Shown piece after piece: positions 1,900 to 18,136 of a DNA stretch of 31,836 nt (positions are counted from its first letter, which is position 1; each line of letters starts with the position of its first letter). The DNA lies in NCBI GenBank assembly GCA_024704765.1, contig JAKMXF010000079.1, positions 1-31,836 on the forward strand. The letters run 5' to 3'. The notes beneath the pieces were generated by a model. It had not been told where the DNA came from. It did not search any database and was given only the letters and a program-made list of their open reading frames with translations. The stretch is from Oopsacas minuta (lineage: Eukaryota > Animalia > Porifera). The position numbers and the translations under genes are program-made.

Positions 1900-3657
1900 G
1901 GATCGAGAAATTTCGCAAAAGCTGCTAAGAGAACTAGTCTACACAGCAAATTATATTTTTATCAAAGTTTCTTTAACAAATTTACATCCGATACATATTA
2001 CAATGACAATATACAAACATCAGCGACTAATATTTGAACAAATTTTATACACATAACAATAGACAGGGACAGATTGGACAGATTGTTACCGCGACACACA
2101 ACATTTGCTATATTATGCAACAGATGTATGGATTGGATTATCTAATCAACTATTGAGAACATATTATGTTCATGAAACAATTCATGAGTTCTTAAACCAA
2201 GAAACTAAGATTGATTAATAATTATTTCTCAAACGCACATTCACCTCAAACAAATCAATTCAACATATTCAATAAATTTGAAAGAAAACGTACAAAATAT
2301 TCAAAATATAGAAAAATAATAAAGGCATAGTACAATATTCATGATTTCATCTATTAGCTCAGAAACCAGAACTAGATGTACAAATCCCGAGTAAATGAAC
2401 CCAGAATGTAATATTTATTCTCATATACACTCAACTATCAACTCTAATCCATTCAACACCCCAAACGAAAAATGAACTATACGTATGTTTAATGAAATCC
2501 CAAATTTTACTTACAATTACAATATGTATACAATATTGGATTATTCCAAAGCAGATCCATAATTCTTCAACTTTGCACACAGAAATCCTATACACAGATA
2601 CATCAATCCAATAATAATGACACCATTATTTACCCACAACCATCCCCCACATTCCTGATTTTTGGTAACAATGATGAATCACTTTCATCTTTTCCTCTGA
2701 CATTATTCCAGAGGTCTCAAAGAAGATTCCACCGAGACTTACTCATTGAAGATGCTTTGCATACAAGTGCATACAACTGGTGAGTCCTAATAATTATTTC
2801 GAAGATAATATTGAAGTGTATGACAGAAAATATAGATGTTAATGACTAAGAAAATCCTTTAATCAAGACATAATGAACAGAATAACTGACCAAAAGAATT
2901 CTATATAAAAGAGGATAGACTCTTTTCCTCAAATTTCTTCGTTCTCTACATACAACTGAGTCGATAGTCCAACGTCTGCTGGGCCATATAAATAATATTA
3001 TTGTTCTTATTATTGTTTACAAACTAGTTTAAACTCTACTGGCAATTAACTAAACAAACTAGTGACAAATTTAATACAAATATGTGTTTACAATTTGTAG
3101 AACATTAAAACAATAAAACAAAAACAACAAAACCAGACGAAGACAGAATGTTACCACGACAAAAATATTTGTAGTATGGACGTATGATCTCAATTACTCT
3201 AGCAATATATCACAGATGAATTATTGATGATTTCGGATTCTATAACTGGAATATGTGCATAGCTAGCTTAACTGAAGTAAACCTGAATACCTCTGATTGA
3301 AACCTGAACCCCTACCAGATGACCATACAGCTTCTGTTAAAAGAATTATACTAATGTATATTCTGTAAAACAAAACGGTCATAATGACGAATGTAACAAA
3401 CAGAATATAAACTTTACAGCCATCATATAGAACTAACGTACTACTGGACAATACCCTAATATGTATATCATCTTTGTTAACATCAGTCAAACCTAATAAT
3501 AGACTTACAAATAGACATCTACAATTCAAACTAAAACAACTGATAACACAATTTACGCAAACAGTGACTTGTATGCTACAAAAGAAGTTGAGAAACCACC
3601 AAGCAAGAGTCACACAGTTAAACCATTCATCTAGTAATAATCATATGGGAAAGTAAA
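1900..3657 (+). pseudogene. Highly decayed Penelope-like RT relic
   Basis: A-rich, G-poor plus strand; frame-broken motifs in PLE order: ILDYSK..FNFA (about 2530-2580), DNIEVYDRK..RITDQK (2800-2900), QFVEH (about 3090), CSMDV.S..YSSNI (3170-3210), IDLQI...TIY (3500-3560). Many stops. Confidence 0.4.
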
Positions 3658-3659
3658 TC

Positions 3660-3890
3660 CTATCTTTTGGTATCCTGTGTTCTGGTATCCTGAGGTTCAT
3701 ACAGGGATTCGTTTTGAGTATATCTTATTTTGTTATGTTGCGACTCAATTGCTGTCCTCTATCTGATGTGCTGATTATGTTGGGTTTTCTTGAATATAAG
3801 ATATATCTTATTTCTGTGTTTCCAAGTTGTACTTGACTCTATGATTTGAGTTGTTAATTTGTGTCAAAGTTCGAAATTCTTCATTAAAGT
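3660..3890 (-). pseudogene. Small decayed PLE pre-RT fragment
   Basis: Minus-strand pieces NIISTSDRG (ADKG-like) and KIRYTQNESLYE; the strand skew flips at about 3657. Confidence 0.3.
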
Positions 3891-3947
3891 ATAATATTGC
3901 GTGTGATGCAAGAGAATTGCATCTATATTATTATAACACAAATTAAT

Positions 3948-4291
3948 CTATAACGAGCTGCTTTGCTTGCTCGCGCTGCGCGGCTTGCAAACACTTCGCA
4001 TCAGACTTGGCCCTTCATGGCTCGATTTAACAAAGTATAAAATTGCAAAAAGGAATTAATAAATAAATATTTCAATTATTTGTTTACTTCATCAAAACAA
4101 CAAAATTTAGGTATAATAAACTTGAAAATGCGAAATTCAGATTCAAACATACTTTGTTATCCCAAGGTAGCTTTTAAGAGCAAGTCTCTACGTATATTTT
4201 GAGATTTCAACTATTTGTTTACTTTATATTCATAAAAACAACAATAAATTTGCATATGAGAAACTTGACAATTCGTTGAAATTCGGATTCA
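3948..4291 (+). mobile_element. Diverged non-autonomous repeat (Helitron/Helentron-like), copy B
   Basis: GC-rich start TATAACGAGC...GCTCGCGC, followed by a segment (4167-4291) homologous to the reverse complement of 818-939. Confidence 0.45.
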
Positions 4292-5144
4292 ATTTACCTG
4301 ATTACCCCAATGTAATTGTTTGCTTTCTTATATCGTCAACAGAAGGATAGAATTGTGTAAACTTTAGACCACAAATCTATATGAATACTGACAAAATTCA
4401 GTGACATTTAACCGAATACTGCCGAGAGATATTCATTAGATTTTGAAGTAGCATTTTCTATCATCAATTTTACATAAAACAATCCAATTACCTCTCATAT
4501 TGATTGCGATTAAGTGATAAATAATAATTGGATAATTGATTCTTTCATTTCTACTATTTTAAGTTATCATTGCAGCTACACGAGTTGACCTAGATATTTT
4601 TTCTTTACACTAACCTATAAACCAAGAATATATCTATCATACGTAAAGAAATTAATTTGAAATCGTCATTGAGGCAGAAAATATGCATGAAATTATACTA
4701 GTTGTGATATTTATTGGCTACACCAAAAAAGGTAATGAATTATTCCCACTTGCAATTATAGATCAATTATATTACTGATTACTCAGGTTTCAACTCTATA
4801 GATTCCTCTAATTACTTAGTATTATTGAGAAGCAATTCAAATACAGTATTTCAATGTATTAGATATTCTATCGAATATTTATCAGCGTGTACCATGTGTC
4901 ATTTATGGTGGCCTATTAGTATATGTGACCCATATGACCCATTATATATGTTCCCACGAACATTAAAATAAGTGACTCGTGATGCAACAACTCATCCAAT
5001 AAAACAACAACAACAACAACAACAACAAACAGTGTAAATTCTCTCTCTCTTCTCTTCTCTTCTCTCCTCTCCTCTACAAACACCTCCAGGACTGCTAATC
5101 CCAATGAGTCTTTACCGTCCACCCAAGAATTATTCTCGCGTGTA

Positions 5145-5594
5145 TTGTGTGAAGTTACACCAAGCCTCTCTCCGCCTCAGCGCGCTGAATTTGACGATCT
5201 GGCAGCACAAGTATCGGAGTTGTCGCTCTCACATGGTGAGGTAACTGCTGGGATAAAGCGTGATGCAGAGGAAATAAAGTTAGACATGGCAGTAATGAGA
5301 TCTGCAATTGAAGCCCTCGGAAAGAACGAGCGTGATAAGGAGAAACTACAGGCAACTATTGCAAGACTTGAGTCAGCGGTTACCCAGCTTCGTGACGAGA
5401 ATGAACAACTGCTAGAGCAGCAAAGCAGAGATGTTACTGCACAGGTTGCACCGTCTACTGAGTCTCTACCATCATACGCATCTGCAATCAGGTCATGTAC
5501 CCTGAAAGTGAGTGTCAGCCGTGGTGATCCTGATGAATCTTATCACATCATCCGAGAGGCCTCGTGGAGGAACCAGAGATCTAAAGAAATGTGA
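5145..5594 (+). pseudogene. Inverted paralogue of the coiled-coil ORF, without a proper start codon
   Basis: Frame is open from 4983 to the stop at 5594 with no upstream ATG (track start is TTG); 4 aa differences from the minus copy in the core. Confidence 0.6.
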
Positions 5595-5630
5595 AGAAAT
5601 GTAGGTTAAAACTTAGAAAAAACAACTCAC
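5581..5630 (-). other. Putative 50-nt spliceosomal intron in the inverted-repeat spacer
   Basis: Minus strand TG|GTGAGT...TTAAC (branch-like, 5609-5605)...TTTCTTCACATTTCTTTAG|ATC; the acceptor coincides with the inner end of the left arm. Confidence 0.7.
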
Positions 5631-6307
5631 CAAAACCGGTCAGGCGGTTTGCACTGACTGGTTGATCTCAAGTTCCTCGCACGAGACCATCTCGGACAAG
5701 CTGGTAAAGACTCATCAAGACCGTCACGGTTGACACCCATTTTCGGAGTAGATGATCTGATCGGAGATACGAATGATGGTAGAGACTGAGTAGACGATGC
5801 AACCTGTGCAGTAACATCTCTGCTTTGCTGCTCTAGCAGTTGTTCATTCTCATCACGAAGCTGGGTAACCGCTGACTCAAGTCTTGCAATAGTTGCCTGT
5901 AGTTCCTCCTTATCACGCTCGTTCTTTCCGAGGGCTTCAATTGCAGATCTCATTACTGCCATGTCTAACTTTATTTCCTCTACATCACGCTTTATCCCAA
6001 CAGTTACCTCACCATGTGAGAGCGACAACTCCGATACTTGTGCTGCCAGATCGTCAAATTCAGCGTGCTGAGGCGGAGAGAGGCTTGGTGTAACTTCACA
6101 CAATACACGCGAGGATAATTCTTGGGTGGGCGGTAGAGACTCATAGAGATTAGCAGCCACCGGAGGGTAAGTAGGGAGAGAGTGAGAGAAAGAGAGAGAG
6201 ACAGAGGGTTGTTGTTGTTGTGATTGCGGGTCCGGCGGGTCCGGCGGTTCTGGAGTCGGGAATTGGGCGGGTGGAACCCTCCCCAAACATGGGAAGTATA
6301 TTCTCAT
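5627..6307 (-). CDS. 226-aa protein with Pro-rich N-terminus and central coiled coil, function unknown (gag/ORF1-like)
   Basis: ATG 4 nt after a strong splice acceptor; PEPPDPPDP motif, heptad-rich helix (LAAQVSEL...LLEQQ), C-terminal KPPDRF. No family recognised. Confidence 0.65.
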   Translation of the reverse strand: MRIYFPCLGRVPPAQFPTPEPPDPPDPQSQQQQPSVSLSFSHSLPTYPPVAANLYESLPPTQELSSRVLCEVTPSLSPPQHAEFDDLAAQVSELSLSHGEVTVGIKRDVEEIKLDMAVMRSAIEALGKNERDKEELQATIARLESAVTQLRDENEQLLEQQSRDVTAQVASSTQSLPSFVSPIRSSTPKMGVNRDGLDESLPACPRWSRARNLRSTSQCKPPDRFW

Positions 6308-6311
6308 GTTC

Positions 6312-6366
6312 CTAAATACAATATAGAATAAAAGATATGACTTAGATAAGTCGTGACAAAACTTAC
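6312..6366 (-). other. Putative 55-nt 5'-UTR intron
   Basis: Minus strand AAG|GTAAGT...CTTTTATTCTATATTGTATTTAG|GAACATG: consensus donor, pyrimidine tract and acceptor. Confidence 0.75.
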
Positions 6367-6467
6367 CTTAGAAAAAGTTTGATCCGGTGGTGCAGTCTGA
6401 ACAATCTTATATTATGGTGTATTTATGTGATAAAATTGTAAATAAATATTTGAATAAATCTTCTTCC

Positions 6468-6474
6468 TTATATA
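6468..6474 (-). promoter_or_regulatory. Candidate TATA box of the coiled-coil/hairpin transcript
   Basis: TATATAA(GG) on the minus strand about 100 nt upstream of the donor at 6366. AT-rich context lowers specificity. Confidence 0.45.
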
Positions 6475-6649
6475 CCTGACCTCACGCCTCTTGGGAGGTT
6501 TAGAACAAGTAGTAATACCAATTGTTAACGTAATTGTTAAAATATTTCCCCATATCTATTTTACTGTTTTGTGATGCATAAAGTGTTAATTATTTAATAG
6601 ACTTCAAGTGATGATTTGTCATGTATGATATAGTCCGTGTTGATTTTCT

Positions 6650-6958
6650 TTAGTTTTCTCCTCCAATCTGTTTCCTTGTTATCTCTGCAGTTGTAGGGTG
6701 TCGTATAGGAGCTGGGGGGTAAAGAGCTAGTACTTGCCATTTGATAGAGGGGCTGAGTTGGTTTTTAACGATGTTGTGCTTTTCTGCGTACTTGAGTGTA
6801 GAATTCTCAGTGTTAGCTATCCCTATGAGGACGTGTGGGTTGTTAGGCTCACCATTTGCGTTTTTCCCATAGTGCAGGAGGTACAGCATGCGTAGTCTTG
6901 TGCACGGTATAATGGGGTTGAGAGGTGTACGCTTGCGAGGGTCTCGTAATTGTTGCAC
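6650..6958 (-). CDS. GIY-YIG-like endonuclease domain of the PLE (frameshifted continuation of RT)
   Basis: PCT..MLYLL...VLIG...KYAEKH...WQVL...AEI...GEN-stop follows the PLE EN layout, preceded by C..TC.MC in the RT frame; one extra base at the G4 run 6914-6917 would join the frames. Confidence 0.6.
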   Translation of the reverse strand: MQQLRDPRKRTPLNPIIPCTRLRMLYLLHYGKNANGEPNNPHVLIGIANTENSTLKYAEKHNIVKNQLSPSIKWQVLALYPPAPIRHPTTAEITRKQIGGEN

Positions 6959-8241
6959 ATTCTGCAGGTGTAGGATGGACAGTGTATATAGTTATGGTTG
7001 TGGGTGGACTTTGGCATTTGGTAGCAGAGTTGTCCTTTCAGTAGCGCGAGGGGGATATTGGGGATAAGGTGGTAATCCGTGATCTCCAGGTGGTGTAGTT
7101 GGGATTTGGTTGGTCTGGTTTGGCTGTATGTATATTTGAGGATTGGCTTGAACTCAAAAGGCTCTTTATCTGTTCTAGTGGGGAAGTAGCATATGTTAAC
7201 AAGCTTGGTTGTAACGTCTCTGAGGTTGTGTCCCAGTCTTTTGAGGGATGGGAGATATCTGCGGAGGAGGTGGTCAAGTGCATCCGCTGGGTTCGTTGCT
7301 ATCTTGGATGCTCTAAAGGCGCTTGATTGGTACGTATTTTTGCACATTTTCCGTCTAGGGTGGTAAGATTGGGGATGTAGAAGTACCGGTTGTCTGTATT
7401 GTTGTGTAATTGGTTTAAAGGTCTTTGTTTGGGTGTCATAGATGCAGTCCTGAGTGGCATTGGGTGCTGTTTCTTTTAAGGTGTACGGTCCTAGTGGCAG
7501 GTCCATAACTGGGAAGGTAGCTGCCAGGTCGTCAAAGTAAATTGTGAGGACCAAATTGCCCGGAGGTGGACGGTAGTTGTTTAAGAGGTAGGCAGTGCAT
7601 AATCTAGCTAGTTCAGGAGCTATTGGTAGCCCCATGGGTATCCCTACGTTTCCTAGGTGGAAGAATTCATCACCGTTTGTTGTGAAGTTGAAGTTGAGGA
7701 GTTCTTTTAGGATTAGCATTTCCCTATCATGTCCTGGGATGAAGTGATAAAAAGCTGTTAAGACAAGGTCATGCGGGGTATTGGGATAGAAGGCCTCGAT
7801 GTCTGCGGTATATATGTGTTCCGGTGTTCCTGGTTTGCTTAGTTCGCTAATGGTCTCAAATATGTCCTGTGTAAGGTACGGGTGTAGCTGGATAATGGGT
7901 GTTATAATGTTGCGAATGGTTTTGCTAGCGCAGGAAGTAATGGTATTCTTGTGGTTGATGATGGGCCGGCTGATGTCAACTAGGTTTTTGGCTTCGTTGG
8001 TGTAGGTATAGATTTCCGGGTACTCTGTACTATGGGTTATGGAGGTTGGTTTATGAGTCTTGATTTTGAAGTACATTGTTGGTACTCGATCATCTGTGTT
8101 ATAGAGTTGTGTGTGTGGGTTTACTTGGTACAGTGCATGCTTCAGTTTGGAGATGGCGTTCATATACGTAATGGGGTGGACGTTCGTGGCTGTCTTGGCC
8201 AGGTAGAGTTGATACACCCTCATAACCGTGAAGGTCTTCAT
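6823..8241 (-). CDS. Penelope-like reverse transcriptase
   Basis: ADKG just upstream in frame, PTMYFKIKTHK, RPIIN, TADIEAFYPN, GIPMGLPIAPELA, YFDD, HPQSYHP: the PLE RT motif series. The frame opens at about 8295. Confidence 0.93.
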   Translation of the reverse strand: MKTFTVMRVYQLYLAKTATNVHPITYMNAISKLKHALYQVNPHTQLYNTDDRVPTMYFKIKTHKPTSITHSTEYPEIYTYTNEAKNLVDISRPIINHKNTITSCASKTIRNIITPIIQLHPYLTQDIFETISELSKPGTPEHIYTADIEAFYPNTPHDLVLTAFYHFIPGHDREMLILKELLNFNFTTNGDEFFHLGNVGIPMGLPIAPELARLCTAYLLNNYRPPPGNLVLTIYFDDLAATFPVMDLPLGPYTLKETAPNATQDCIYDTQTKTFKPITQQYRQPVLLHPQSYHPRRKMCKNTYQSSAFRASKIATNPADALDHLLRRYLPSLKRLGHNLRDVTTKLVNICYFPTRTDKEPFEFKPILKYTYSQTRPTKSQLHHLEITDYHLIPNIPLALLKGQLCYQMPKSTHNHNYIHCPSYTCRMCNNYETLASVHLSTPLYRAQDYACCTSCTMGKTQMVSLTTHTSS

Positions 8242-8641
8242 TATTAGTAGTCCCGGGCCTTTGTCTGCTGATAGAATTTGGAGGTTCTCCTTTTTTTAAG
8301 TTGGCTTTAAGGTTTTTAAGCAGTTGGTTGTAGCGGCTATAGGTCCTCTGCTCATATTTGGGGATTTGGTAATGAGTTAGAGGGGGGCTGTTATTGTCGA
8401 GCTCCAGGATTCCTTTGAACGATGTTAGGAAGGGGTTAGGGTGGTCATCTTGTGGGGTTTGAAAGGTGAGGCCATATTCTAGGAGTTGTTGGAGAATTGA
8501 TGCTGTATTAATGTTGCCTGTTTGGTGGATGAATATTGGCGGAGGTTTATATTCCCAGGTTGAGGGGATTGGTAGAGGAGGTGTTATACTGATGGCTGCA
8601 TGTTGGGTTCTGCCAGTTTGGTGTATAAGGTGATGGTGCAT
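8099..8641 (-). CDS. N-terminal part of the PLE RT protein (frameshifted)
   Basis: LLEYGLTFQTP matches the PLE N-terminal LL.KGL.F.P motif; removing one base from the T7 run at 8291-8297 fuses it to ..NLQILSADKG. The frame is open upstream to 8797. Confidence 0.75.
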   Translation of the reverse strand: MHHHLIHQTGRTQHAAISITPPLPIPSTWEYKPPPIFIHQTGNINTASILQQLLEYGLTFQTPQDDHPNPFLTSFKGILELDNNSPPLTHYQIPKYEQRTYSRYNQLLKNLKANLKKGEPPNSISRQRPGTTNNEDLHGYEGVSTLPGQDSHERPPHYVYERHLQTEACTVPSKPTHTTL

Positions 8642-8711
8642 GCTTTTGTCTAGTGGTGTCGTGTGTTCTATGCATAGGCGGCAATTATGGGAGAGGTATG
8701 TGTCAAGTAGG

Positions 8712-8746
8712 AGGGAAGGCGGAAGGGCACTTAGTCCGCCTTCCCT
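8712..8746. other. GC-rich stem-loop with a perfect 12-bp stem
   Basis: AGGGAAGGCGGA (8712-8723) / TCCGCCTTCCCT (8735-8746), 11-nt loop. Confidence 0.85.
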
Positions 8747-8780
8747 AAATGAAAAGGACCCTCTGAAGTTTGTGCCTGAT

Positions 8781-9662
8781 TCACCTTGATGGTAAATTCA
8801 TCACTGCGCCAGATGGGCTAGGTAGTATGTTGTGGGTGGGTGCAACTGCCATTATTGCATTGGGCTGTTCGTTCCTTTGGGCATGTCCTATTGGATGTTG
8901 AGCAGCCGAAGTGTTTGCGCTCATTTTTGGCCGTTCTATCTCTGCCCACATTTGGCGCACAGGGAGATTGCTTTGCAAGCGGTTACCAGCTGTGGATATA
9001 TCTTGGCTTGTTCTGATTGCGGGGGCCTTGTTGGGTGCAACTTTGTAGAAATTAGATCTTTTTTCAGGGTGGTTTGCCAGTGGCCATCCTTTGATTTCCT
9101 GGTGGTTTGGATATCCCTGGGTGATTGTATTGAAGGTTTCCACAAAGTGTTTTCTGAGGGCGAGTGGTAGAGTCTTGGTGTATTCTTCAAGGGATTTAAA
9201 TCGTGGTGCTATCGTGAGCTTATCTGTATATTTTTTGTCTGTGGTTGTGAAAATTGTGGCTGTTGTGAGGCATTTCGCACAGGGGTATTGAGTTGGTACC
9301 ATTGGTTTCAGGTTTGGAATTTTCTTTGGTTTCGCAGCGATGGGTAGTCTATCTGAGGCTGCTGCTGCATAACTTTGGAGTTTGGGTCCCGTTTTCCGAT
9401 CTAAGGGTTGGAAGAGTTCACTGTTCCTGATTTCAGTTTGTAAAAGTGTAGTTAAGAAGCTTCTGGCCATAGTGTTGGCGTCCATGTGGAGGGCTTGCAT
9501 GATTGTTCGATATGTATGGGAAGGGAACTCTGGTAGATTTAGGAGTGGTAGGTAGTTTTTTGGAGTGTGTTTGTGTTGTCCAGTAGTACATTTAGGCCAT
9601 AGGCCGTTAGTTGTTCGTTGTATGTTTTTTTTGTTCTGCATTGTTTTTGGCTTTTGCAACAT
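8781..9662 (-). CDS. PLE-associated ORF1b, 293 aa, unknown function
   Basis: Long open frame co-oriented with RT and sharing its skew; SYAAAA and a single CAKC motif; no family recognised. Confidence 0.6.
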   Translation of the reverse strand: MLQKPKTMQNKKNIQRTTNGLWPKCTTGQHKHTPKNYLPLLNLPEFPSHTYRTIMQALHMDANTMARSFLTTLLQTEIRNSELFQPLDRKTGPKLQSYAAAASDRLPIAAKPKKIPNLKPMVPTQYPCAKCLTTATIFTTTDKKYTDKLTIAPRFKSLEEYTKTLPLALRKHFVETFNTITQGYPNHQEIKGWPLANHPEKRSNFYKVAPNKAPAIRTSQDISTAGNRLQSNLPVRQMWAEIERPKMSANTSAAQHPIGHAQRNEQPNAIMAVAPTHNILPSPSGAVMNLPSR

Positions 9663-9689
9663 ATTGGCTTTCGTATGGTATGTCTAGTT

Positions 9690-10406
9690 CTAGTTGTTCA
9701 AAGGTGGCTGCCGCAAGCAGCCGGATATAGAATGATTTAATAGAATGTGGTGCATTAGTGAATCAATCGCTTGGGAGATAGATAGTTTTTGGGGGAACGT
9801 CAGTTTGTTTGGCTGTGTATCTTCCAGGTAGAAGTACTCCTCGGAATTCAGGATGTTATAGAGTGCGCAGTTATGTGGGAGGTTAGCTAGGTAGCTTCCT
9901 TCGCCACTTGTGATGTTATATGGAGGAGTTGAGCTAGGCGTTGGTTCGTCATTTGTTGTTATAGTTTTGGGGTTTGTACGGGCAGTGGGCTGTTTGGGTG
10001 TAATTTCCACATTAGGTGATGATTTGTAGGTTGTGGAAGATAGGTTTGCTGTGTGTTGTGAAGGTGGTTGCACTTTAGTTGATGATGTTGTAGGTTTGTA
10101 TGGTTTGTCAGGGCTTTCGTGCTCAGCAATGCTGAGGTTTGATAGGTTTGGAAGGTCATCAAAGAATTTGGATAGCCTGGGCGGTCTGTTGATAGGGGAG
10201 CCTGAAGTACGGTTTACAGAAGCGCTGGGAGTTGGCGTAGCCAGCAGCGGTCTTCTGGAAGGTTTAGCTGGTGGGACATTGGTGAGCCTTGGAGATTCAG
10301 AGGTTGTAACTCCAGTGCTTGCAGCTCCACCAGCGGTCGGTTGTGAGGGCTTCGCCTTACTAACCGCCGGCCGTTGGGAAGTGCGGGCAGGACGATGAGT
10401 AGTCAT
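9690..10406 (-). CDS. PLE-associated ORF1a, 238 aa, S/T/P-rich N-terminus
   Basis: ATG about 105 nt downstream of TATAAATA; same frame as ORF1b, separated by TAG-AAC-TAG. Confidence 0.6.
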   Translation of the reverse strand: MTTHRPARTSQRPAVSKAKPSQPTAGGAASTGVTTSESPRLTNVPPAKPSRRPLLATPTPSASVNRTSGSPINRPPRLSKFFDDLPNLSNLSIAEHESPDKPYKPTTSSTKVQPPSQHTANLSSTTYKSSPNVEITPKQPTARTNPKTITTNDEPTPSSTPPYNITSGEGSYLANLPHNCALYNILNSEEYFYLEDTQPNKLTFPQKLSISQAIDSLMHHILLNHSISGCLRQPPLNN

Positions 10407-10511
10407 TGCTTTTGCACTATTAAAAGTCGATTATTTTTGCAAGGTAAATAAGTTAATTGTAATAGTTCAGGGTGCAAATTTACAGAAGTGGAAAAATATA
10501 AAACTTTCGTG

Positions 10512-10519
10512 TATTTATA
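10512..10519 (-). promoter_or_regulatory. Candidate TATA box for ORF1a
   Basis: TATAAATA on the minus strand upstream of the ATG at 10406. Confidence 0.4.
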
Positions 10520-10529
10520 CACTTTTCAA

Positions 10530-11340
10530 CTGTACTGTTGTATTAGTTTTCAGCTTTGGAATGTGCCTGTCATTATGTCCATAGATTGCCTATTGATGTG
10601 TGTCTGTATTGTGTCAGTATTGTGTTATGTGTGTCTGCATTATGTGTGTTCTGGTGAGTAGTGGTGTGCTGCAATGTATTGCTATTGCAACGTATTGCTG
10701 TGTTGCAAAGTATTACTGTTTTGCAATGTAGTGCTGTTGCAGGATACATTGCAAAATGTTGTAGTGGAAATGTTATAGGTGAGATGTTATAGTAGGATAG
10801 TTGTAGGATATTGTTTATGTACTGTGTTATATTGCTGTTGTTGTAAGATTTATGTTGCAAATGTTGTTGTAGAAGTTATGCAAATGTTGTTGCTGTGTTG
10901 AAATGTATTGCTTATGTGTTGTAGTTTGCAAATGTTGTTGTGGAAAGTATTCTGTATTGCTATATATCTTTGCATTGTAAATGATGTTGTAGAAATAGTC
11001 CTGTGTTATAATGAATTGTTGTTGTATTGCTGTTATTTTGAGATTAATGTTGCAAGTGTTGTTGGAGTATTGTTGTAGAGTACTTTATTGTTTGTTGCTG
11101 GAGTGTAGGGCTGATGCTTGAATGTTGTGTAGTTGTTATGTGATTTGTTTGTGTTGTAGATGCTATATTTGTTTTGAAAAGAATGTTATATTATTTGTAC
11201 TCCTTGTAGGGGCTTTGGGAAAGTATATTGAGAGCTCTGAGGTGGTGTTTGCAAGCTGGTGTTCTCAAGCTCATTCGTTCAGAAGGGTAGATGTAGAGGA
11301 TATTTGTGTGAATATGTAGAAAGGTATATTAGTAGTATGA
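10530..11340. repeat. G/T-rich low-complexity tract with degenerate TGCAAATGTTGTTG repeats
   Basis: Motif recurs near 10750, 10857, 10880 and 10927 with further variants; C is only 3/60 in line 10861. Confidence 0.7.
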
Positions 11341-11420
11341 TCTTATGTTAATGGATAATAAAGTTTGCAAATTGGGGACCTGTTAGTTTTGCTGTATTAA
11401 TTTAAGCTAACTGTCTAAAA

Positions 11421-13745
11421 CGGGCTTGTCCAACCTTTTTTGTTCGCGGGCCAAATGAGGGCTTCTTTATCTACTTGAGGGCCGCACGACATTGGATATA
11501 TCAAGGTAGCATGATGTTATTTATTTGGGGATGGCGTTAATACGGATTATTTCAGAATTGAAAAATCACTACATGTATTATTTAATTATAGTAAACTTTA
11601 ATGATAAAGAACATATCTAATGGGATATCTGACTTTGTTTTTGTTTACACAAAGAGTCAATATCTGCTCGTACACTTGATGTCGCAATCCGTAATATTCC
11701 TGATAGATGAGTGTCTGTCAGGAGTGATCTAGACTTGCTTTTAACATTTTTCATCATTGAGAAAAGCTGTTCACAGCAATACGTGCTGCCAAATAAGGAA
11801 AGGAACCTAAGGGCGTGTTGCGATAAATTAGGAAATAGATCCGATGTAACATATTGACCATAAAATGTCAGAAGGTCATGCTCTGCAAAAGCTCTCTTTC
11901 TCTCCGAGTTATTTTGTATTTCAATTAGTTCCAGTTGGAACATTTCAGGAGCATTAGTGGCATCAGTTCCAAACGGATCTGCAAACAACTCCATTTCATC
12001 GAATTTGTCACTAAAATCAGAAATCTTAGTTTAAATTCATCGATTATGCTGTTGATCAGTGCAGAATACTTGTCATGATTCACTGTCTCACTTTTTCTTG
12101 AAGATAATGTTGAGAAATGTACCACCTTTTTCAAAATAAATTGTTGGTGGAATAATTGTAATTTGTTGATGAACGCTTTGACATGCTCATACAGGTTGTT
12201 AACGAATTGTTTTCTTCCTTGTAGTTTCAGATTTAAATCTGCGAGATACTTAGTTATGTCAACTAGAAATGCGAGATCATTCAACCACTGATCATCATCC
12301 AGAAAGCTCACATCCTTTCCCTTAATGGTCATGAATGTTTTTATTTCTTCAAGTAGTGACCAGTATCTGGCTAGAGTGGACGCTCTGCTGAGCCAGCGAA
12401 CTTGGCTAAAGTAAATAACATCGTTATAGTCTGATTCTATCTCTGCAAGAAACGCTTGGAATTGTCTGTGATTGAGTCCCTTCGACCTTATGAAATTGAC
12501 TGTATTGACGACATTTTCCATCACATGTTTCAGATCTAAGGTTTTTGCACAAAGTTGTTCTTGATGAATAATGCAGTGGTATGCCATAACAGGAGAGGTC
12601 ATTGATTTGAGCATAAGGCTAACAAAGCCTTTATGCTTTCCTGTCATCGTAGGGGCTCCATCGGTTGTTAAACCACTTAGTTTTTCATCTGCAAGTTTGA
12701 ATTTCGTAAACACATGTTTTACTACATTGAAAATATCTTGCCCAGTAGTTGTGCCTTTCATTGGACATAAGTCAAGCAGTTCTTCGATTATTTCGAAATT
12801 TTCTGTGACACCAAGTACAAAGATTGCCAGTTGAGCTGTGTCGCTAACATCGGTACTTTCATCAAGGGCCAAGCTGTAAAATTTGCAAGCATTGAGTCGT
12901 TTAATTAGTGAAATTTCAATGTTGGATGATAAATCATCTTCTCTTCTAGCAACAGTTTGATGTGACAGACTGATGCTCTCTACTATCGACTTCTTATTTG
13001 GGCATGCCACAGATGTAAATATGTCTAAGCAGTCTTTTACAAATTCCCCTTCAGACAATGGTTTTCCACTCTTGGCTATCGCTTCTGTTATCAGAAAGCT
13101 GATCTTTGTTGCTGTCTCAGAACTTAATTTAACGGCTTTGAAGAAAGATTGTTGACTGTTGATGCTATCCTTCAACAGGTTCACCCGATCGATTCTCACC
13201 TGACCTGTAAGCGTGTCAAATGTATCTGCATGTTTAGTAGAGTAATGTCGTTTGATATTATACTCTTTGAATACAGCTATCTTCTCCTGACATATCAAGC
13301 ACAATAAGTATTCGTTGTGTTCTACGACGAAAAAATCTAATGTCCATGAGGATTTGAAAACTCGACATTCACTATCAATTTTCCTTTTCTTTGCTTTAAT
13401 CACGGGAGTTGACATATTTGTTTTGTAGTTATTTTAATATTGTTTAAGATGGTTTATTATTTGGAATTTATATGAGCTGTTCGAGTTGAGAGAAACCCAG
13501 TTATGTGACAGATGATTACTCAATCAAAACTAAATTACAAAGTTATTTAAGGATTTTTAAGTTATTGAAATCACACTTTTCTGAAATTGGTTTCATTCAA
13601 TTTGGTTTTGCAATATTGGGTTTCTCTTAATTGAGTTCGCTCAAATAGGTTTCACTCAATTAAATATCGCCACCAACTGGTAACAGTTCCCGAGCATGTT
13701 GGCGGGCCGGATTGTGGCCCGCGGGTCGTAGGTTGGACAAGCCTG
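11421..13745 (-). mobile_element. hAT transposon, Buster/SPIN (GTF2IRD2-like) type, 2325 bp
   Basis: 16-bp TIRs CGGGCTTGTCCAACCT / AGGTTGGACAAGCCTG (1 mismatch) around a transposase; both flanks fit nnnTAnnn but differ (GTCTAAAA vs CTGTATCC). Confidence 0.93.
11617..13415 (-). CDS. hAT transposase of about 600 aa split by one frameshift
   Basis: CLIC...RHYSTKH zinc finger, LALDESTD, TTDGAP, HCIIHQEQLC, VRWLSR, CEQLFS; one extra base at the AAA run 12021-12023 restores RFSDFSDKFDEMELFADPF. Confidence 0.92.
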
Positions 13746-16804: not shown

Positions 16805-18136
16805 CAGGGTGTTTCACAATTGATTCGTATTTTCTAAATTTGTTTATTATGCACCCATGCAATAATATCTGTGTATTTAAACTTGCAATCGTAATTAATC
16901 TTACAGGTTCTATTGAGTAATTATTTCATTCATCAATCGAAACATTTTATAGCTTCTATTTCCTATCCAAATTGGGCTAATTATTTGCATAATATAATGG
17001 TGAAAGAATACAGTATCATGATTCGCTCACAGGCTGTTGCATGCTACAAGCTGGCTCATATCAGAAGTTTGTGTCTCTTGAACTTGGAGTTAATATCCGT
17101 ACAGTTCAGCGTTGGTGGCGACTTTTCAAGAATGATTTGACATTAGAAAACAAATGGGGACGTGGCCGTAAATCGTCCATATCGAAAGTTGCCAAGATTG
17201 TAATTACTAAATCAATTGGCAAAAAACGACAGTCTGTACGTGGTCTATCCAAGAAATTAAAGTTGAAAGGTCATTCCGTATCTCAGAGTACAGTGTACCG
17301 TTATTTGACAAAAGAAAAAGGCGTAAAATCTTACAAACACCAGCGGCAGCCGTTAATAACAGAGAAAAACATGTCTTCTAGGTTAGAATTTTGTAAAGAA
17401 CGTGTCAATTGGACAGCAAATGATTGGAAAAACATATTGTTTACAGATGAATCACCGTTTGAGTTAAATCATCCCCCAAACAGGAAAAATTATTGTGTTT
17501 GGGCGAGAAACGCATTGGAAGTCGAGTCCGTTCAGATGGTGAAATTTCCAAAGAAAATTCAAGTATGGGGTATGATGTCACATCGTGCACTGTCGGAGTT
17601 ACATTTCATTCCCGTTGGACAAACTGTATCTGCAGAGTACTATGTTAGTGAGATACTGGGTAAAACTTTAATGTCTACAATGAACAGAAAGCGAGAAAGA
17701 GGCACAGTTGTTGAGAGGAAAATGTTAAAAAATATGTCCCGTGCGATATTTCAACAAGATGGCGCTCCAGCTCACACGGCAAACATGACACAAAATTGGT
17801 TGAGAAGTAACCTAAAGAGTTTTTGGGCGAAAGGTACCTGGCCAGCCAACTCTCCAGACTTGAGTCCCATTGAGAACATATGGTCCATTTTGAAAGATGA
17901 TCTAGATTCTATAGGTGAGTTTAAAGACATAAAAATGTTGGAAAATCGACTGAAAACAGCATGGTCCAATATTTCACCAGAGGTTTTGGACAAATTGATG
18001 GATGGAATGCCAAAACGAATCCATAAGTGTATTGAACTTAGTGGAGGATATATTGGCAAATAATTGTAGTAATATATCTAGTATTCTATTAGTTATGTAA
18101 TATTGTATAACACGACATCAATTGTGAGACACCCTG
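16805..18136 (+). mobile_element. Tc1/mariner transposon, 1332 bp
   Basis: 20-bp TIRs CAGGGTGT(T/C)TCACAATTGAT with 1 mismatch; TA on both flanks (16803-04, 18137-38). Confidence 0.97.
16997..18063 (+). CDS. DD37E Tc1-like transposase
   Basis: HTH N-terminus, LFTDES, FQQDGAPAH, WPANSPDLSPIENIW with 37 residues between the second D and E. The likely start is ATG 16997 with a 1-nt loss near 17048-17050; the track ORF starts at 17041. Confidence 0.92.

Follow-up and report, generated by a model that had tools for sequence, protein, structure and literature searches.

What kind of gene is formed by a long inverted repeat with an apparent intron in its loop, and does it belong to the host or to a mobile element? 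This question is raised by contig JAKMXF010000079.1 of the glass sponge Oopsacas minuta (assembly GCA_024704765.1, G000 in our numbering; 61.46 Mb in 365 contigs). The entire contig, of 31,836 nucleotides (nt), was analysed and is called here the window. A preliminary description of its segment 5001-6474 had proposed a free-standing host gene of the intron-spliced hairpin RNA (hpRNA) type, directed against a coiled-coil gene family or against the cargo of the adjacent retroelement. We conclude that the hairpin unit (4408-6606) very probably belongs to a piggyBac-type DNA transposon, of which it forms the right-hand module. The explanation of its function that we favour, and to which we give an even chance, is that of a transposon accessory gene whose conserved, self-complementary and intron-looped 3′ arm would give rise to a hairpin RNA and to small interfering RNAs (siRNAs) against the gene itself.

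Contigs of the O. minuta assembly are designated by C and a number (the window is C79), and L026, L027, L028, L029 and L031 are contigs from long-read metagenome assemblies of four other samples. We call T arm the promoter-side arm of the inverted repeat, F arm the other arm, and T gene the transposon accessory gene. Unspliced sequences were the reference in all folds and searches, and the DNA and six-frame protein searches, with arm or open reading frame (ORF) queries, covered the whole O. minuta assembly. In the order in which it would be transcribed, the putative unit comprises:

6441..6598, minus strand: promoter block with the TATA box TATATAA at 6474-6468
6367..6445, minus strand: first exon, in the 5′ untranslated region (UTR), its start placed from the position of the TATA box; the least conserved segment
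6312..6366, minus strand: 5′ UTR intron of 55 nt, donor AAG/GTAAGT at 6367/6366 and acceptor TTTAG/G at 6312/6311 (intron 1)
5627..6307, minus strand: ORF of 226 amino acids (aa), the T gene, with its ATG at 6307, a Pro-rich N-terminus, poly-Q and a coiled coil
5664..6221, minus strand: T arm, the sense arm, part of the coding sequence
5631..5663, minus strand: 33-nt tail found only after the sense arm, encoding the last 11 residues; the predicted loop once spliced
5581..5630, minus strand: putative loop intron of 50 nt, GTGAGT .. TTTTAAC .. TTTAG (intron 2)
5016..5580, plus strand: F arm, an inverted partial copy of the coding sequence, with its sense on the plus strand

An ungapped inverted-repeat search over positions 4000-8000 returned a single pair of arms (5051-5541 and 5707-6197, 491 nt, 90% complementary), which gapped alignment stretches to about 5016-5580 and 5664-6221 at a complementarity of about 90%. 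Identity is highest in the core of the arms, at about 97%, and is lower at the outer as well as at the loop-proximal ends; the longest perfect Watson-Crick run between the arms measures 76 bp, and 37% of the 21-mers of the F arm occur identically in the T arm. The F arm, which would form the antisense 3′ arm of a minus-strand transcript, holds an open frame at 5037-5585. When the minus strand is read, the loop intron presents the donor G/GTGAGT (5631/5630), a TTTTAAC branch-like motif and the acceptor TTTAG/ATC (5581/5580). As the final stem pair joins 5664 with 5580, the loop measures 83 nt unspliced and would measure 33 nt if spliced. The spacer is therefore one nucleotide longer than the 82 given in the preliminary description, which was right in placing the acceptor exactly on the arm boundary and in its estimate of the spliced loop. 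The stop codon of the ORF overlaps the intron donor. It had been noted that splicing recreates this codon (TG/A), which is correct, and a TGA is also read in the unspliced form (TGG TGA). The other elements of the anatomy were likewise found as described: the TATA box at 6474, the canonical ends of the 55-nt intron at 6366-6312, the exon with the 226-aa ORF running from ATG 6307 to 5627, the sequence signals of a canonical 50-nt second intron at 5630-5581, and a further stretch antisense to the preceding exon. RNA folding, put forward earlier as a check, gave -816.5 kcal/mol for the unspliced RNA 6100-5150 against -287 ± 6 for shuffled sequences (z = -82). The long inverted repeat can thus be folded as a single RNA, as is characteristic of hpRNA loci.

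Upon finding such a structure in a single contig, an assembly artefact has to be considered, false palindromes being a known failure of short-read assemblies. One contig of the assembly does end inside an arm-like stretch: C39:63417-63515, at the contig end, is a 99-nt piece that matches window 5674-5772 at 100% and is joined to unrelated ORF-like sequence, which makes this piece either a truncated copy or an assembly join. The arms in the window, however, differ from each other by about 10% and carry arm-specific indels, and the palindrome recurs with the same spacer at three loci of this assembly and at five loci of independent long-read assemblies. A false palindrome can on these grounds be practically dismissed, and the inversion described earlier stands.

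Within the O. minuta assembly, a hairpin 97% identical to that of the window is present on C348 and one 87-93% identical on C65, while C315 holds a single-arm fragment. The same hairpin architecture is found in all five long-read contigs. One homologue of the ORF is the NCBI protein LOD99_10844 of O. minuta, which lies on C65. When a profile built from six copies was compared with 1.8 billion representative proteins, 18 matches were obtained at E <= 0.001, and all those that were traced are further copies of the family with the same arrangement. Neither the DNA nor the six-frame protein searches of the whole assembly detected any family member outside transposon copies or their fragments. Accordingly, this assembly lacks the separate target gene complementary to the arms that an hpRNA locus should have, and the coiled-coil gene family put forward as a target dissolves into transposon copies. 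Judged from the sequence, the sole possible target of the hairpin would be the accessory gene of the transposon itself.

That the unit is part of a transposon follows from its ends, from its insertion sites and from the gene next to it. All four features tested class it in the piggyBac superfamily. The parts of the window that define the element and its limits are:

4408..4411, strand not applicable: TTAA target site, the outer edge of the transposon, where the homology of all copies ends
4412..4426, plus strand: right terminal inverted repeat, CCGAATACTGCCGAG
4427..4996, strand not applicable: right subterminal region (F flank), 74-90% identical across full copies and hairpin-less derivatives
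6607..13426, strand not applicable: outside the module, a Penelope-like element and a hAT transposon, which replace the intergenic region and the transposase gene of other copies

In all copies, homology stops at TTAA plus CCGAATAC, and the same terminus follows the TTAA in C348, C65, C315, L027, L028 and L031. Beyond the TTAA the sequence differs from locus to locus (window, C348, C65, C315, L027 and L031), as in independent insertions; copies that had arisen as segmental duplicates were considered and rejected for the same difference in their outside flanks. The left end of L027 bears the inverted counterpart of the right terminus, CTGAATACGG. The two ends of L027 agree at eight of the first nine bases (CTGAATACG vs CCGAATACG), the repeat being short and imperfect. 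L027 holds a complete element of 7,175 bp between TTAA 643-646 and TTAA 7822-7825; put together, the sequences on either side of it make up one monomer of a 50-bp satellite. An exact-match search of the satellite for the empty L027 insertion site found none; on reading the satellite monomers, a near-identical uninterrupted site is seen, with TTAC or TTAA (the uninterrupted monomers read ..ACTCCTTACAGCTCCC.., and one ..CTCCTTAAAACTCCC..). Hairpin-less deletion derivatives with the same end are present on C20, C44, C304 and at C65:3771.

In six copies (L026, L027, L028, L029, C348 and C65), a transposase of the PF13843 (DDE_Tnp_1_7) family is encoded about 1.1 kb from the promoter of the T gene, on the opposite strand and thus divergently. 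Only two of these ORFs are intact, those of L026 (791 aa) and L027 (798 aa); the ones in C348, C65, L028 and L029 are broken. The two intact transposases are under purifying selection (nonsynonymous and synonymous divergence, pN 0.27 and pS 0.80). The window keeps only one transposon end, at TTAA 4408-4411, and its copy is a deletion derivative in which the transposase part has been replaced by the Penelope-like and hAT elements. RVT_1 and hAT domains lie in 6607-13426. As homology to the other copies ends at 6606 and window 13427-13745 matches the far flank of L026 at 79%, the Penelope-like neighbour is a later insertion and not a partner of the hairpin. Other copies adjoin the transposase gene, satellites or other sequence, and not a Penelope-like element. 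This largely disposes of the cargo of the retroelement as a target. The possibility that the hairpin is itself part of a Penelope-like element, in which inverted structures resembling pseudo-long terminal repeats (pLTRs) and retained introns occur, was also considered and rejected, the other copies being without that element.

The idea of a host hpRNA gene of the Nmy/Tmy kind, silencing coiled-coil paralogues or the neighbouring retroelement, can now be weighed. It draws on an architecture that is indeed like that of an hpRNA locus, on the location of copies in repeat-rich DNA with satellite flanks in L027 and L028, and on the fast evolution of the ORF. Nevertheless, the unit lies within the TTAA and terminal-repeat bounds of a piggyBac-type transposon and moves with a transposase, it has no relatives outside transposon copies in the searches of the whole assembly, and it shares no sequence with the Penelope-like element. 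We consider a host gene highly unlikely. What remains of the intron-spliced hairpin first described is its layout (promoter, sense arm, loop intron of a spliceable type, antisense arm); the host-gene identity and the proposed targets do not hold.

The transcription unit has been conserved in an uneven manner. Its promoter, both introns and an open frame are retained even where copies have diverged by 30-35%. Conservation between lineages is best in the promoter block and in the two introns. The promoter block is 85-95% identical to that of the window in L026-L028 (L027 92%, L028 85%), and is still 84.5% identical in L029, though the L029 arms are only about 70% identical; its TATA box is invariant. 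Intron 1 is 85-91% identical between lineages, and its donor is GT in most copies and GC (AAG/GCAAG) in L026 and L027, which is the sole change of a splice dinucleotide. The acceptor of this intron sits 4 nt ahead of the ATG. A glass-sponge genome paper describes a trans-spliced leader of about 37-44 nt (PMC10282587), and the acceptor (window 6311-6313) could also accept a spliced leader. Intron 2 is identical in the window and L027 at all 50 bases, while the arms differ by 13-17%, and it is 84% identical to that of L028. Its donor, branch-like motif, pyrimidine tract and acceptor are kept in seven of eight copies (window, C348, L026, L027, L028, L029 and L031); in L031, which is only 65% identical overall, GTGAGT, a TTTTAAC-like motif and AG/ATC persist. 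As the acceptor of intron 2 is conserved, a downstream exon should exist, and this exon is the antisense arm. The actin genes of O. minuta, which were examined as a gauge of short introns, are mostly intronless.

The 3′ signals point in the same direction as the acceptor. In the six copies examined, neither AATAAA nor ATTAAA occurs from the stop codon to where the F arm ends. The first canonical polyadenylation signal, poly(A), available to a minus-strand transcript is the AATAAA at 4715-4710, beyond the F arm, and its position is kept in five of six copies.

Is the T gene a real gene? From its sequence we think it likely that it is a genuine protein-coding accessory gene, whose frame selection has kept open, and more than one arm of an RNA. 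Window and L027 both retain the ATG and the open frame; in L028 and L029, too, the arm region of 163 codons is open. At the divergence observed (13, 19 and 30% of nucleotides with respect to L027, L028 and L029), the probability that a neutral sequence would be free of stop codons is 0.11, 0.04 and 0.008, respectively. The ORF is fast-evolving, with a length of 180-260 aa among copies and a ratio of nonsynonymous to synonymous substitution (dN/dS) of 0.6-0.75 in deep comparisons. Constraint is therefore weak, which is what one would expect of a coiled-coil protein of low complexity. The window holds the sole intact copy of this ORF in the O. minuta assembly. With the 226-aa ORF as query, Pfam returned only sub-threshold coiled-coil matches (TSC22, ADIP) and a protein Atlas search only generic coiled coils with scores <= 0.82; Rfam gave no match anywhere in the window at the gathering threshold.

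Taking into account that long open frames are present on both arms in most copies and that gene callers predict proteins on both strands, the locus might also be read as two convergent, tail-to-tail protein-coding paralogues, each with its own promoter and with 3′ ends that merely abut. Yet the F arm has neither a start codon nor a promoter block nor an upstream exon that is conserved, and the ATG candidates in its flank are not conserved either. This flank is the subterminal region of the transposon, present as well in derivatives that have no arms. Moreover, the F frame shows no conservation at its C-terminal end, and repeated gene conversion by the T arm accounts for its being open. A pair of convergent genes is for these reasons very improbable.

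How has the hairpin persisted? All the full copies that we found, from at least five diverged lineages, have the inverted arm, and its breakpoints are the same in all of them. As the breakpoints are shared, and single-base deletions specific to the F arm near the loop are shared too, the duplication must have happened once. Within a copy, T and F arms are nonetheless alike, with identities of 97.6% in L029, 93.4% in L028, 92.6% in the window, 90.1% in L027 and 88.0% in L031 (86-98% over all copies), against only 65-88% between lineages. In a maximum-likelihood tree, the T and F arms of L028 pair with each other (support 100/100), as do those of L027 (99/96). Since the arms pair by lineage and are alike within a copy, they have been repeatedly homogenised. 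Between 23 and 37% of the antisense-arm 21-mers match their own T arm perfectly, and about 3% match other subfamilies. Homogenisation would in this way keep a duplex of a grade suitable for Dicer. In C65 (26104-28314) the centre of the hairpin, that is, the spacer and the inner parts of the arms, is flipped relative to its flanks, from which it follows that the arms do recombine. The same copy has a second solo terminal repeat with a TTAA about 150 nt outside the first one. In L029:1-5900 the region of the transposase has itself been duplicated in inverted orientation, fragments of PF13843 lying on either strand (964-2519 and 2909-4904), and a second TATA box of the hairpin gene is found at position 10 in the opposite orientation.

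The divergence of the elements themselves is mosaic. Between L026:1009-7720 and L027:647-7821, identity is 83-91% in the ends, in the intergenic blocks and in the hairpin module, but only 50-75% of nucleotides and 59% of amino acids in the transposase ORFs, where synonymous sites are saturated. This is the reverse of the usual pattern, and suggests either exchange of modules between transposase lineages or a strong constraint at the nucleotide level.

Sequencing runs and the gene content of the sponge bear on whether such an RNA could be made and processed. Seven runs carry sequence of the unit, and none of them is recorded as RNA. The Logan contigs of runs X1, X4, X5 and X6 on window 3800-7300, for which the kind of run is unrecorded, are short and cover both introns in unspliced form. 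Promoter, introns and arms are covered evenly by the run contigs, with a sharp drop at the edge of the element. These contigs look like DNA, and neither support nor refute transcription. The difference between X1 and X4 in the ratio of unit to flank depth was considered as the mark of an RNA run; it was rejected on account of the even cover, of the stop at the edge and of an abundant repeat that accounts for the depth (the depth at 4151-4267 is what a repeat with 1,200 or more genomic copies would give). As for the machinery of RNA interference (RNAi), the genome contains Argonaute/Piwi genes, of which at least five with a Piwi domain are intact, Dicer-type genes with a pair of RNase III domains, and genes for RNA-dependent RNA polymerase (RdRP, PF05183), eight in number, on C33, C348, C177, C313, C321, C221, C354 and C66 with uninterrupted frames of 2,061-2,671 aa. 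It is thus predicted to encode what such a hairpin would need. One RdRP gene, C348:19916-21649, lies about 30 kb from the hairpin copy of C348.

The mechanism that we propose combines these elements. The T gene would be transcribed through its inverted copy up to the poly(A) signal at 4715-4710, and the loop intron would then be spliced out. The RNA would fold into a duplex of about 560 bp with a loop of 33 nt, which the Dicer, Argonaute and RdRP machinery of the sponge could cut into siRNAs. The perfect targets of these siRNAs would be the accessory-gene mRNAs of the same transposon subfamily, and the outcome a built-in, copy-number-dependent brake or a silencing trigger. The steps are not equally secure: that a read-through hairpin transcript is made is, on what the sequence tells, somewhat more likely than not, the production of siRNAs from it falls a little short of an even chance, and selection for the hairpin, as opposed to mere tolerance, seems to us doubtful.

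The differences between the arms bear on this proposal from both sides. Among unique differences, those compatible with G.U pairing in a transcript with T sense predominate over the opposite class (54 vs 31, p = 0.017; 23 vs 11 in L031), although these counts are not phylogenetically independent. The bias might come from selection for wobble pairs or from transcription-coupled mutation, and either origin would imply that both arms are transcribed from the T side; we take this as weak evidence. When the arm differences were polarised with outgroups, to see if the F arm is the faster-evolving one, too many sites stayed ambiguous.

Several further points weigh against the proposed function. Transcription-coupled mutation would yield the same G.U bias without selection, and concerted evolution of close inverted repeats is expected from gene conversion alone. 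The 54 G.U-type differences are accompanied by 39 transversions and 31 differences of the A.C type, all of which break pairs, so that pairing is not tightly protected base by base. The flipped loop of C65 has no GT..AG intron on the promoter strand, and the published average introns of this species measure 194-341 bp, against 50 and 55 nt for the candidates described here. No contig with the splice joints 6367/6311 or 5631/5580 occurs among the 15 joints listed of 25, the contigs being DNA-like. Every transposase copy of the family in the O. minuta assembly is broken. Finally, it is paradoxical that a transposon should trigger RNAi on its own conserved gene, unless the dose of this gene must be limited.

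The hairpin might instead be a tolerated relic. According to this explanation, a single inverted duplication, produced in an ancestral element by template switching at a GATC microhomology in the course of gap repair, was inherited and has since been homogenised passively by gene conversion without any siRNA function, the accessory mRNA ending near the spacer or bearing an inconsequential hairpin. GAGATC/GATCTC is common to both arm ends at the junction and fits a microhomology-mediated fold-back; the identical breakpoints of all copies speak for one event, the flipped centre of C65 for recombination between arms, and the many pair-breaking substitutions for the want of protection. On the other hand, intron 2 and its signals have been better conserved than the arms and are kept at 35% divergence, and their conserved acceptor implies that the antisense arm is an exon. 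Not one full copy in at least five diverged lineages keeps the gene and has lost the inverted arm. Nor is there a poly(A) signal ahead of the antisense arm. We take the relic as a serious contender, albeit one that we do not expect to prevail.

If the accessory gene does act through its own hairpin, two roles can be envisaged. A conserved, continually homogenised, promoter-driven and intron-looped hairpin, carried by an autonomous transposon family against its own accessory gene, could be an RNAi autoregulator that senses copy number or a subfamily-specific weapon or immunity device, an idea that we regard as speculative and rather improbable; its second form was raised because only about 3% of 21-mers are common to subfamilies. 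In any case, a third of the sequence has changed while the promoter, the splice signals, the open frame and the complementarity of the arms were retained. Should the RNA be made and diced, this would be a transposon that programs RNAi against its own second gene, and a case of self-regulation or of competition between subfamilies. It would also mean that the design of engineered intron hairpins has a counterpart in nature, in an early-branching animal whose genome is rich in RdRP, Argonaute and Dicer genes. If the RNA is not made, the locus is still a clean example of long-term concerted evolution in the internal palindrome of a DNA transposon.

The surroundings of the unit are rich in repeats, and the window is a nest of transposons. 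The hAT transposase at 11617-13415 has a Spin-doc zinc finger, DUF4371 and a hAT dimerisation domain, and a Tc1/mariner transposase (HTH_Tnp_Tc3_2, DDE_3) is encoded at 17041-18063. Just outside the transposon edge, window 4200-4270 is the core of a very abundant short repeat without an Rfam match, of which a second, diverged copy lies at 4069-4106. It often occurs in small clusters with a spacing of 141 bp, and a first look gave at least 1,201 candidates in the assembly; its summed contig depth in three runs is 51,000-147,000, vs about 8-10 for neighbouring unique sequence. In the long-read contigs, arrays of an approximately 50-bp satellite surround the L027 element (L027:1-645 and 7827-12537), the satellite array L028:8340-12885 contains repeated transposon-end motifs (at 12466 and 12609), and at the left end of L028 the terminal 39 nt are inverted between two TTAA sites.

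How does this element compare with systems already known? Engineered intron-hairpin RNA (ihpRNA) constructs, such as the plant vectors of the Smith/Wesley type, consist of a promoter, a sense arm, a spliceable spacer intron and an antisense arm. The sponge unit has the same order of parts, with a putative intron as the spacer, and the differences that it is natural, that its splicing is predicted, that its sense arm is an intact ORF whose stop overlaps the donor, and that its arms are about 90% and not 100% complementary. With the piggyBac superfamily it shares the TTAA duplication, the short terminal inverted repeats and the DDE_Tnp_1_7 transposase. It departs from that superfamily in having an extra, divergently transcribed coiled-coil gene with an inverted copy of itself, and in that the L026 and L027 transposases are far more diverged than the ends and hairpin modules; the hairpin module may have been exchanged between transposase lineages as a cassette.

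The Drosophila hpRNA loci of the Nmy, Tmy and hp-CG4068 class are likewise long inverted repeats derived from a protein-coding gene, and they are rapidly evolving, multi-copy and satellite-flanked (bioRxiv 10.1101/2021.08.05.454923). They are host loci with non-coding arms that silence separate, paralogous driver genes in trans, whereas the sponge unit, a candidate source of small RNAs, has one coding arm and no separate target in the assembly and is borne by a transposon.

The closest parallel is found in maize. Mu killer (Muk) is a hairpin read from a flanking gene that silences MuDR (PMC3440606). Like the sponge unit, both Muk and the inverted duplications that silence Ac/Ds repeat part of a transposon gene in inverted orientation, and their transcription can yield a long hairpin, which has been proposed as the substrate from which siRNAs acting on the transposon family are made (PMC3440606; bioRxiv 10.1101/2020.01.07.897926). 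Muk, however, is a rearranged and immobile derivative, dependent on read-through from a flanking host gene, directed against the transposase and serving the host as a silencer. In the sponge, the inverted copy lies within elements whose two ends are present and which, in the case of L026 and L027, encode an intact transposase. It is complementary to the accessory gene and not to the transposase, and its promoter and loop intron are its own and are conserved. It has passed through many transpositions and is found in at least five diverged lineages. While the known transposon hairpins are accidents exploited by hosts, as in Mu killer, the hairpin described here looks like a standing part of mobile, transposase-encoding elements.

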